DNA of 64,000 bases, from contig NC_088794.1 in the NCBI RefSeq assembly GCF_011386835.1, forward strand, positions 104,594,001 through 104,658,000, given 5' to 3'. Under the pieces are notes generated by a model. It was not told the DNA's origin. It saw nothing but the letters and a program-made list of their open reading frames with translations, and ran no database searches. This DNA is from Chrysemys picta bellii. Its lineage: Eukaryota. How positions within the stretch are numbered: position 1 is the stretch's first letter; every line of letters begins with the position of its first letter. Of this stretch, positions 38,307-54,000 are shown piece after piece. A program made the position numbers and the translations under genes.

Positions 38307-38494
38307 NNNNNNNNNNNNNNNNNNNNNNNNNNNNNNNNNNNNNNNNNNNNNNNNNNNNNNNNNNNNNNNNNNNNNNNNNNNNNNNNNNNNNNNNNNNNNN
38401 NNNNNNNNNNNNNNNNNNNNNNNNNNNNNNNNNNNNNNNNNNNNNNNNNNNNNNNNNNNNNNNNNNNNNNNNNNNNNNNNNNNNNNNNNNNNNN
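38307..38494. other. N-run (188 bp)
   Basis: Seen directly. Confidence 0.99.
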
Positions 38495-42950: not shown

Positions 42951-43098
42951 NNNNNNNNNNNNNNNNNNNNNNNNNNNNNNNNNNNNNNNNNNNNNNNNNN
43001 NNNNNNNNNNNNNNNNNNNNNNNNNNNNNNNNNNNNNNNNNNNNNNNNNNNNNNNNNNNNNNNNNNNNNNNNNNNNNNNNNNNNNNNNNNNNNNNNNN
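42951..43098. other. N-run (148 bp)
   Basis: Seen directly. Confidence 0.99.
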
Positions 43099-44959: not shown

Positions 44960-45339
44960 NNNNNNNNNNNNNNNNNNNNNNNNNNNNNNNNNNNNNNNNN
45001 NNNNNNNNNNNNNNNNNNNNNNNNNNNNNNNNNNNNNNNNNNNNNNNNNNNNNNNNNNNNNNNNNNNNNNNNNNNNNNNNNNNNNNNNNNNNNNNNNNNN
45101 NNNNNNNNNNNNNNNNNNNNNNNNNNNNNNNNNNNNNNNNNNNNNNNNNNNNNNNNNNNNNNNNNNNNNNNNNNNNNNNNNNNNNNNNNNNNNNNNNNNN
45201 NNNNNNNNNNNNNNNNNNNNNNNNNNNNNNNNNNNNNNNNNNNNNNNNNNNNNNNNNNNNNNNNNNNNNNNNNNNNNNNNNNNNNNNNNNNNNNNNNNNN
45301 NNNNNNNNNNNNNNNNNNNNNNNNNNNNNNNNNNNNNNN
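44960..45339. other. N-run (380 bp)
   Basis: Seen directly. Confidence 0.99.
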
Positions 45340-47321: not shown

Positions 47322-47414
47322 ATAAAACTAAAATTATCCAAAACACTGGGATGGGGAAATGTTGGTTAAAGAGGAGTGGAGTGTAGGGGAGAGGGAAGAA
47401 TGAGAAAGGTAAGC
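47322..47414 (+). promoter_or_regulatory. Candidate TATA box plus short upstream exon ending at a 5' splice donor
   Basis: TATAAAA at 47322-47328; AAG|GTAAGC donor with GT at 47409-47410; no transcript evidence available. Confidence 0.35.
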
Positions 47415-47541
47415 CTCCGCGGCGATGCGTCCTTCCCCTGGTATCCCTGCGCGGCAGGGGGCTTTGGCGGTGCTTGGAGGGTGGGGGGAGCAGGAGGAGG
47501 AGAGAGAAGGGGTGAGGGAAGAGGAGGAGAGGGGAGTCCTG

Positions 47542-47670
47542 ATTGGCTGGCTCCGGGAGAGACGCTCCTGCACGCCGAGGTTTCTGATTGGGCGACCGGT
47601 GGAAAAGGTTAAACCAAAAATTTTTTTACAGCCCTAGCGTGTGTCTGTAGCTCTGAAATTAATTGTGGCT
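47542..47670 (+). promoter_or_regulatory. FOXG1 proximal promoter: two reverse CCAAT boxes and probable TSS
   Basis: CTGATTGG twice (ATTGG at 47542-47546 and 47587-47591); AATTGTGGCT at 47661 matches the start of the human FOXG1 mRNA as recalled. Confidence 0.6.
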
Positions 47671-47770
47671 AAAGCTGTCTCTATAGCTGCCTCTGCTGCT
47701 CTGCGCCGCCGACCCGCCCGGCTGCTGCTGTCCCCCCCGGGCTCTGGTGGAAGCGGGGGGACCGGGCACC

Positions 47771-47785
47771 ATGCAGGAGTGCTGA
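47771..47785 (+). promoter_or_regulatory. Short upstream ORF (MQEC*)
   Basis: GCACC-ATG-CAG-GAG-TGC-TGA with A at -3; the first of only two ATGs in the proximal leader. Confidence 0.6.
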
Positions 47786-47829
47786 ACGGGGCTGTGATTG
47801 TGCTCAGTGGCTCCGAGCGGGGATCGGGG

Positions 47830-47886
47830 TTTGTTTTTCCTCTTCCCTCCCCGGCGGCTCCTGTCCTTGCTACATGCCTTGCCAGC
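47830..47886 (+). promoter_or_regulatory. Candidate 3' splice acceptor in the FOXG1 leader
   Basis: Polypyrimidine tract 47830-47852, 66-nt AG-free zone (47818-47883), then CCAG|C at 47882-47886. Confidence 0.45.
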
Positions 47887-48065
47887 GCCTGCGACTGCGG
47901 TCCAACTGCACTGCTGCTGCTCCAGCCCGGGGTGCCGCCACCTCGCTGCCCAGCGCGGCCGCCGCCGCCACCTCTACCGCCACCGCCACCCCGAGCGCTG
48001 CTCACTGGGCCGCTGCAGCAACTTTCCCCCACAGACTAGTGTGTGATGTTGGACATGGGAGATAG
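47874..48065 (+). CDS. Out-of-frame overlapping upstream ORF, 63 aa ([12 protein letters not shown]...DVGHGR)
   Basis: ATG at 47874 (weak context, T at -3), 172 nt before the main ATG; stop TAG at 48063-48065 inside the FOXG1 CDS. Translation not demonstrated. Confidence 0.45.
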
Positions 48066-49446
48066 GAAGGAAGTGAAAATGCTGCCGAAATCCTCCTTTA
48101 GCATAAACAGCCTGGTGCCCGAAGCCGTCCAGAGCGACAACAACCACAACAGCCACAGCCACCACCACAACAGCCACCACCCCCACCACCACCACCATCA
48201 CCACCACCACCACCACCACCCGCAGCAGCAGCCCCAGCGAGCTGCCCCGGCCGAGGAGGAAGAGGAGAAGAGCCAGCTCCTCCTGCAGCCCCCCGTGGTG
48301 GCGGCGGCAGCTGCGGCTGCGGCCACCACCTCTGGCACCTTGGAGGTGGCCAAGGAGATCCTGCCGGGCAAGGGGGAGCCGGGCTCGGCCTCGGCAGCCG
48401 CAGAGCTGGAGGAGAAGGAGAAAGCGGCGGCGGCGGAGGAGAAGAAGGGGGCGGCGGAGGGGGGCAAGGAAGGGGAGAGCGGCAAGGAAGGGGAGAAGAA
48501 GAACGGCAAGTACGAGAAGCCCCCGTTCAGCTACAACGCGCTGATCATGATGGCCATCCGGCAGAGCCCCGAGAAGCGCCTCACCCTCAACGGCATCTAC
48601 GAGTTTATCATGAAGAACTTCCCCTACTACCGGGAGAATAAGCAGGGCTGGCAGAACTCCATCCGCCACAACCTCTCCCTCAATAAGTGCTTCGTCAAGG
48701 TGCCCCGCCACTACGACGACCCGGGCAAAGGGAACTACTGGATGTTGGACCCTTCCTCCGACGACGTCTTCATTGGGGGGACCACGGGCAAGCTCCGCAG
48801 GAGATCCACCACCTCCCGGGCCAAGCTGGCTTTCAAGCGAGGCGCTCGGCTCACCTCCACCGGACTGACATTCATGGATAGGGCTGGATCTTTGTATTGG
48901 CCTATGTCCCCTTTCCTCTCCCTGCACCACCCCCGGGCCAGCAGCACTTTGAGTTACAATGGGACCACGTCCGCCTACCCCAGCCACCCCATGCCCTACA
49001 GTTCAGTGTTGACTCAAAACTCTTTGGGAAACAACCACTCCTTTTCCACGTCTAATGGGTTAAGTGTTGATAGACTAGTCAATGGAGAGATACCTTATGC
49101 CACTCATCACCTCACAGCAGCAGCTCTGGCCGCCTCAGTGCCATGTGGCTTGTCAGTCCCCTGCTCTGGCACCTATTCCCTAAACCCTTGCTCTGTAAAC
49201 CTTCTAGCAGGACAGACAAGTTACTTTTTCCCCCATGTTCCTCACCCTTCAATGACTTCTCAAAGCAGCACTTCAATGACGGCCAGGGCAGCCTCCTCCT
49301 CCACGTCTCCACAGGCGCCCTCCACTCTCCCTTGTGAGTCCTTAAGACCTTCTTTGCCAAGTTTTACAACAGGACTTTCCGGGGGACTTTCTGATTATTT
49401 CACACATCAGAATCAGGGGTCTTCTTCAAACCCTTTAATACATTAA
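48046..49446 (+). CDS. FOXG1: Forkhead box protein G1 (BF-1/Qin), intronless CDS, 466 aa
   Basis: [12 protein letters not shown] start; eh1-like FSINSLV (48097-48117); His12 tract; forkhead domain [38 protein letters not shown]... (about 48517-48804); Groucho-binding YWPMSPF (48895-48915); C-terminus [10 protein letters not shown]. The true start is ATG 48046, not the track's GTG at 48043. Confidence 0.99.
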
Positions 49447-50035: not shown

Positions 50036-50353
50036 NNNNNNNNNNNNNNNNNNNNNNNNNNNNNNNNNNNNNNNNNNNNNNNNNNNNNNNNNNNNNNNNN
50101 NNNNNNNNNNNNNNNNNNNNNNNNNNNNNNNNNNNNNNNNNNNNNNNNNNNNNNNNNNNNNNNNNNNNNNNNNNNNNNNNNNNNNNNNNNNNNNNNNNNN
50201 NNNNNNNNNNNNNNNNNNNNNNNNNNNNNNNNNNNNNNNNNNNNNNNNNNNNNNNNNNNNNNNNNNNNNNNNNNNNNNNNNNNNNNNNNNNNNNNNNNNN
50301 NNNNNNNNNNNNNNNNNNNNNNNNNNNNNNNNNNNNNNNNNNNNNNNNNNNNN
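50036..50353. other. N-run (318 bp) inside the FOXG1 3' UTR
   Basis: Seen directly. Confidence 0.99.
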
Positions 50354-53869: not shown

Positions 53870-54000
53870 NNNNNNNNNNNNNNNNNNNNNNNNNNNNNNN
53901 NNNNNNNNNNNNNNNNNNNNNNNNNNNNNNNNNNNNNNNNNNNNNNNNNNNNNNNNNNNNNNNNNNNNNNNNNNNNNNNNNNNNNNNNNNNNNNNNNNNN
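53870..54000. other. N-run (131 bp)
   Basis: Seen directly. Confidence 0.99.

Follow-up and report, generated by a model that had tools for sequence, protein, structure and literature searches.

Conserved upstream open reading frames in the FOXG1 leader of Chrysemys picta bellii and other tetrapods: a candidate brake on FOXG1 translation

The presumed leader of the FOXG1 gene of Chrysemys picta bellii carries a pair of upstream open reading frames (uORFs), one very short and followed by a longer one that runs out of frame into the coding sequence, and the start codons of both recur at homologous places in other tetrapods. Comparison of these loci suggests that the conserved pair restrains and buffers the translation of FOXG1, a reading to which we assign a probability of about 0.5. 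The gene lies in the window, i.e. the whole stretch of 64,000 nucleotides that was analysed, and the coding sequence and the uORF layout are as follows:

48046-49446, + strand: FOXG1 coding sequence (CDS), one exon, 466 amino acids plus stop, identified by translation of the open reading frame, a protein match and the Pfam Forkhead domain
48037-48039, + strand: TAG in the frame of the CDS, 9 nt before Met1, the sole frame-0 stop of the leader, which shuts frame 0 upstream
47771-47785, + strand: uORF1, read from the sequence as ATG CAG GAG TGC TGA (MQEC-stop), 4 codons, strong start context
47786-47873, + strand: spacer of 88 nt from the uORF1 stop to the second upstream ATG, its 3' half pyrimidine-rich
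47874-48065, + strand: uORF2, found in the list of open reading frames and in the sequence, 63 codons, weak start context, running out of frame over the first 20 nt of the CDS

In a protein search, the FOXG1 product showed 98% identity with FOXG1 of Mauremys, Gopherus and Chelonoidis. The only record with exactly this protein is the assembly GCA_011386835.2; the same protein look-up returned no transcript contigs that carry it, the genome record alone being found. The protein matches also included the v-Qin oncoprotein of avian sarcoma virus 31, the known captured form of chicken FOXG1, which has no bearing on the leader. Five runs of N interrupt the window (38307-38494, 42951-43098, 44960-45339, 50036-50353 and 53870-54000).

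The frames and start contexts of the two uORFs are directly observed. The first upstream ATG (uATG1, 47771) lies in ggcaccATGc, with an A at -3, and uORF1 closes with the TGA at 47783-47785. The second (uATG2, 47874) lies in tgctacATGc, with a T at -3 and a C at +4, and the main AUG follows 172 nt downstream of it. The 20-nt overlap of uORF2 with the CDS spans both Met1 (48046) and Met4 (48055). An earlier note on this DNA had described the same arrangement, and its account of a 4-codon uORF1 in good context and of a weak second start that opens 63 codons across Met1 and Met4 proved exact to the base on re-reading. Its statement that there are exactly two upstream ATGs is true for any transcription start inside 47428-48045, a stretch in which a sequence scan found no ATG besides uATG1 and uATG2. 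Reinitiation at Met12 (48079), 13 nt past the uORF2 stop, was considered as a source of a shortened FOXG1 and is unlikely, as uORF2 is 63 codons long and the gap is too short.

Whether the two ATGs are part of the mRNA depends on the start of transcription, for which conserved features upstream of uORF1 give indirect hints:

47542-47591, + strand: two inverted CCAAT boxes with a spacing of 45 nt (ATTGG at 47542 and at 47587), the presumed core promoter, kept in 10/10 species
47657-47665, + strand: AATTAATTG, a block of deep conservation close to or at the presumed start of transcription, found by k-mer comparison

The CCAAT pair is presumed to be a core promoter of the NF-Y type upstream of the leader. 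NF-Y boxes usually lie 60-100 nt before the start site, so transcription is predicted to start at about 47650-47690 and to yield a leader of about 350-400 nt that would contain both ATGs. Indeed, uATG1 is located 184 nt past the proximal CCAAT box in the window (142-202 nt in all species that have uATG1), a distance that would place it inside the leader. From the proximal CCAAT box to the CDS, AATTAATTG is the sole exact word of at least 8 nt that turtles, bird, squamate, frog and mammal have in common. Five small sequencing runs that were guessed to be RNA (three studies, two organisms) held 0.50-0.59 of the sampled words of 47450-48150, a fraction that counts words whose positions were not located, and four large runs, presumably of genomic DNA, held all of them. 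If the held words are contiguous from the 3' end, they reach back to about 47725-47785. An mRNA spliced at 47886 could hold approximately 0.35 of the words of 47450-48150, which is less than the 0.50-0.59 of the guessed RNA runs. Further upstream, 5' of the CCAAT boxes, the blocks CCGCGGYGATGCG and GGTATCCCTGCGC (47417-47470) are common to turtles, birds and squamates and partly present in musk deer and frog; the first of these (CGGYGATGCG) holds an ATG at 47425.

For the comparison, the FOXG1 loci of nine further tetrapods were reached through their proteins. Besides the window, the sample comprised the turtles Mauremys mutica, Chelonoidis abingdonii and Chelonia mydas, the birds Apteryx rowi and Lagopus muta, the squamates Rhineura floridana and Anolis sagrei, the frog Xenopus laevis and, as the single mammal, the musk deer Moschus berezovskii; neither fish nor human was part of it. 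uATG1 was found in 9/10 species, and a purine occupies position -3 in all nine of them. The hexamer GGCACC directly precedes uATG1 in the four turtles, both birds and Rhineura, while the context is cccaccATG in Anolis and gggacATG in Xenopus. Outside the turtles, uORF1 consists of two codons, ATG-AAG-TAG (Met-Lys-stop), and the region around uATG1 reads GGCACCATGAAGTAG in Apteryx, Lagopus and Rhineura, CCCACCATGAAGTAG in Anolis and GGGACATGAAGTAG in Xenopus. In all four turtles the region is GGCACCATGCAGGAG, and uORF1 is 4 codons long in the window and in Mauremys and 8 codons long in Chelonoidis and Chelonia. Within the span of the k-mer comparison, which began 60 nt past the proximal CCAAT box and ended at the CDS, AATTAATTG and CATGAAGTAG are the only exact words of at least 8 nt common to the two birds, the two squamates and the frog. 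CATGAAGTAG occurs a single time per 2.5-kb upstream region, at a homologous place, and the 9-mer ATGAAGTAG is likewise present in one copy in each 2.5-kb upstream region. In the musk deer, the place of uORF1 is taken by GACCGAGAAGTAGAG, which keeps GAAGTAG and is devoid of the ATG, and no ATG besides uATG2 was found within 700 nt upstream.

Since ACC-ATG-AAG-TAG is shared by Apteryx, Lagopus, Rhineura, Anolis and Xenopus, uORF1 is, judging from these loci, ancestral to tetrapods as far as sampled. By the same comparison, the turtle form of 4 codons is derived: the TAG changed to GAG and a new stop was adopted. The earlier note had supposed that uORF1 might be a lineage-specific addition, which is contradicted by the ancestral ATG-AAG-TAG in birds, squamates and frog; the survey of uORF1 across sauropsids that it had proposed finds uATG1 in 4/4 turtles, 2/2 birds and 2/2 squamates. 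The peptide varies between lineages (MK versus MQEC). Turtles thus keep the ATG and its context after loss of the old stop, with a frame of 4 or 8 codons, as would be expected if its start and its shortness are what counts in uORF1.

All ten species have uATG2, which lies within the block TGCTACATGCCTTGCCAGCGCC...CTGCGGTCCAACTGC, and its context is weak in every one of them, with a T at -3 and a C or A at +4; the weak context that the earlier note had remarked on is therefore a constant trait of the sample. uORF2 ends at +20 of the CDS with the peptide ...DVGHGR in the window, Mauremys, Chelonoidis, Lagopus and Anolis, at +20 with DAGHGR in Moschus, and at +31 in Xenopus. For Apteryx the nominal end is also +20, but its phase is uncertain owing to a gap of the assembly within the frame. 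uORF2 of Rhineura is in frame 0 and ends at -6, so that the overlap with the CDS is lost. Overlaps of 20 or 31 nt thus occur in 7/9 scorable species, next to 1 nt in Chelonia and none in Rhineura. Chelonia uORF2 (2328-2501 of the fetched locus) is one base out of register with that of the other turtles; it ends at +1 within TGATG, whose A also belongs to the FOXG1 start codon. The shift could be real or could be an assembly error in a GC-rich repeat.

The distance from uORF1 to uATG2 is less constant and amounts to 88, 75, 77, 184, 183, 199, 298 and 119 nt in the other species that have uATG1. An extra upstream ATG is located between the uORFs in Lagopus (-282) and Xenopus (-167). Between the place of uORF1 and uATG2, birds, Rhineura, Xenopus and musk deer have a long T-rich tract, which follows ATGAAGTAG where this word is present. 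In turtles the tract has shrunk to about 30 pyrimidine-rich bases (47826-47862); turtles have therefore altered both AAGTAG and the T-rich tract.

An alignment read by eye revealed no codon-wise conservation of the uORF2 peptide, the first 12 codons differing at all three positions. As the uORF2 codons display no third-position pattern, the act of translation rather than the peptide would matter, and the overlapped CDS determines the C-terminal DVGHGR. A search of the uORF2 peptide against a protein collection gave no match, an uninformative blank. A uORF2 frame under selection was not demonstrable: the frame is common to 4/6 independent lineages (binomial P of about 0.10), and slippage in GCC/GCT repeats would also hold it. 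The conservation of both uATGs argues for function.

It could be asked whether such a layout arises by chance, the two ATGs of a GC-rich, stop-poor leader happening to fall in this order and having no function. The leader (47650-48045, 396 nt, GC 0.67) was compared with 3000 shuffles that preserve dinucleotides. It contains 2 ATGs compared with 3.4 +/- 1.3 in the shuffles, which is no significant depletion (P(<=2) = 0.24). A short uORF with an out-of-frame overlapping uORF behind it turned up in 16% of the shuffles, and 55% had some overlapping uORF, so the layout by itself is unremarkable. The frame of uORF2 is free of stops from -376 to the CDS; because the leader is GC-rich and stop-poor, any ATG in a non-zero frame runs into the CDS. 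However, both ATGs have stayed at homologous places over approximately 350 million years, with flanks that are otherwise unalignable. In this comparison of loci, it is the conservation of the layout and not the layout itself that goes beyond chance; an origin by chance is disfavoured by the cross-species evidence, and we consider it very improbable.

With regard to RNA structure, the leader (47650-48075) was predicted to fold at -163.5 kcal/mol compared with -180.5 kcal/mol for shuffled sequences (z = +2.88) and was less stable than all 100 dinucleotide shuffles. A stable leader structure is thereby ruled out, and the low predicted structure is compatible with scanning. A conserved RNA structure around uATG2 was ruled out as well, only 9 weak pairs (-3.95 kcal/mol) being predicted, and an Rfam search of 47642-48100 matched no family.

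How the pair would act can be proposed from the start contexts and the geometry, if both uATGs are part of the mRNA and are translated, as we infer together with the direction and size of the effect. Owing to the strong context of uATG1, uORF1 would capture most scanning ribosomes, and many 40S subunits would resume scanning after only two to four codons. A fraction of the ribosomes would then start at the leaky uATG2. Since uORF2 ends beyond Met1 and Met4, ribosomes that start there would be lost to FOXG1; the weakness of uATG2, however, would let most ribosomes scan past it to the main AUG, 172 nt downstream. The net result would be a moderate, constitutive cut in FOXG1 output, perhaps with some buffering against low levels of ternary complex. 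Phosphorylation of eIF2-alpha would bring at most relative resistance or mild relief and no off-to-on switch of the ATF4 kind. Several observations weigh against a role of the uORFs. The overlap is expected in a GC-rich, stop-poor leader, and slippage of trinucleotide repeats can explain the keeping of the frame; the abundance of conserved blocks in the FOXG1 promoter may also speak against it, as may a splice-acceptor-like triplet just past uATG2:

47883-47885, + strand: CAG after a pyrimidine tract, 9 nt past uATG2, a possible 3' splice acceptor judged from the sequence

This triplet leads to a different explanation, in which the conserved blocks serve as some other sort of cis-element, either promoter-proximal DNA sites or, in the case of the uATG2 block, the 3' splice site for an upstream non-coding exon, with ATGs that are incidental or outside the main mRNA. 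Transcripts in which an upstream exon is spliced to the CAG after uATG2 would have neither uATG. In the musk deer, the CAG is preceded by a very long pyrimidine tract and CTAAC, and the window has a pyrimidine tract and the CAG. A consensus donor (AAG|GTAAGC, 47406-47414) is present in the four turtles, and Rhineura and Xenopus have a donor-like GGTAA in about the same position. In addition, several RefSeq start sites are said to exist for mouse Foxg1 in a passage of PMC5172352. The GAAGTAG of the musk deer, kept without the ATG, indicates that this block may have a function that needs no start codon, uORF2 is without codon periodicity, and a further conserved block with an ATG, 5' of the CCAAT boxes, illustrates that a conserved ATG in the FOXG1 promoter need not belong to a uORF. 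On the other hand, GG replaces the acceptor AG in Chelonia while uATG2 is kept, and the double CCAAT box and AATTAATTG would fall into the supposed intron, a position that favours a proximal promoter and transcripts with both ATGs. Furthermore, turtles hold the ATG and its Kozak context although AAGTAG has changed, and the context has stayed strong at uATG1 and weak at uATG2. Taken together, this explanation is possible but clearly less probable than translational restraint by the uORF pair; the two are compatible, and both can be true for different isoforms. With respect to the putative donor, 47400-47414 reads ATG AGA AAG followed by the donor, the GT of which lies at 47409-47410; if this donor were joined to the CAG at 47885, the ATG at 47400 would be in frame with uORF2 (CGC at 47886 being codon 5). 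AA|GTAGTT was also considered as the donor of a small leader intron that ends at the CAG past uATG2; it is an unlikely one, as it has no G at -1, no A at +4 and no G at +5.

The earlier note had compared the leader with that of ATF4 and predicted that FOXG1 is induced when eIF2-alpha is phosphorylated. In such delayed reinitiation, ribosomes that have passed uORF1 would normally be lost at uORF2, and phosphorylation of eIF2-alpha would allow them to bypass uATG2, thereby raising FOXG1. Human ATF4 has a reinitiation-permissive uORF1 of 3/4 codons and an inhibitory uORF2 of 60 codons, which runs into the CDS in another frame (PMC11058473). The geometry in Chrysemys, with a 4-codon uORF1 in strong context, a spacer of 88 nt and an overlapping uORF2 of 63 codons, is a close match, and both uATGs are kept across sauropsids and the frog. 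As in ATF4-type leaders, the 5' uORF is short (4 codons) and, judged from its context with an A at -3, efficiently recognised, and uORF2 overlaps the CDS out of frame, although this is expected from composition. However, uORF2 is not the strong barrier that such a leader has; judged from context, the T at -3 of uATG2 in ten of ten species and the C or A at +4 make it a poor one. The spacer ranges from 75 to 298 nt, and the longer ones would allow reloading before uATG2 even under stress. A further uATG lies between the uORFs of Lagopus and Xenopus, uORF2 of Rhineura ends 6 nt before the CDS, and the overlap in Chelonia is reduced to a single nucleotide. Moreover, unstressed forebrain progenitors make abundant FOXG1, unlike ATF4, and the literature search yielded nothing that connects the translation of FOXG1 with the integrated stress response. 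The geometry and the conservation of both uATGs thus support the likeness to ATF4, whereas a tuned switch is doubtful. Because of the weak uATG2, the variable spacer, the extra uATGs and the loss of overlap in Rhineura, the FOXG1 leader is not filed with those of the ATF4 type, and a true ATF4-type switch is unlikely.

Compared with known systems, the FOXG1 leader resembles those of ATF4 and ATF5 in its very short 5' uORF in good context and in the uORF of about 60 codons behind it, which overlaps the CDS in another frame, and the ATF4 spacer is close to the 88 nt of Chrysemys FOXG1. It differs in the start of uORF2, which is weak and conserved as such, in the spacing of 75-298 nt and in the overlap, which two species have lost or nearly lost; FOXG1 is also strongly expressed without stress. 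The order of a reinitiation-permissive first uORF and inhibitory downstream uORFs recalls yeast GCN4, which, however, has four non-overlapping uORFs and defined reinitiation-promoting flanks. The ancestral AUG-AAG-UAG in strong context is nearly a minimal uORF and comparable to start-stop elements, one of which reportedly lies upstream of uORF1 in human ATF4; the ancestral uORF1 of FOXG1, in contrast, includes one elongation step, and in turtles uORF1 is 4 or 8 codons long. The musk deer, with uORF2 alone, out of frame and with a leaky start, is reminiscent of the single overlapping uORFs that dampen dosage-sensitive genes, whereas FOXG1 of non-mammalian tetrapods adds a conserved minimal uORF upstream. 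Like conserved regulatory uORFs, the FOXG1 pair has start codons that are kept beyond the conservation of their flanks (CATGAAGTAG; uATG2 invariant in ten species), while the uORF2 codons and the different uORF1 peptides set it apart from uORFs with conserved peptides. A more far-reaching scenario would make the minimal AUG-AAG-UAG and the leaky overlapping uORF an ancient module for delayed reinitiation, which ties the dosage of forebrain FOXG1 to eIF2-alpha signalling in non-mammalian tetrapods and which mammals dismantled through the loss of uATG1, only the overlapping uORF being left; we regard this scenario as improbable.

A literature search for FOXG1 uORFs and FOXG1 ribosome profiling found incidental co-mentions only and no paper that treats the subject, so that the uORF pair may be undescribed so far; inhibitory uORFs as a kind of element are already well known. 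FOXG1 is dosage-sensitive, and both excess and shortage lead to severe neurodevelopmental disease. A conserved inhibitory overlapping uORF, if the proposed restraint of translation is true, would be a translational brake on FOXG1 dosage, and the musk deer demonstrates that at least one mammal retains the overlapping uORF. In principle, such a brake would be a handle to raise the amount of protein made from one intact allele. The ancient two-codon uORF beside uORF2, whose ATG is gone in the sampled mammal, would furthermore provide a natural experiment for judging how much a minimal uORF contributes on top of an overlapping one.
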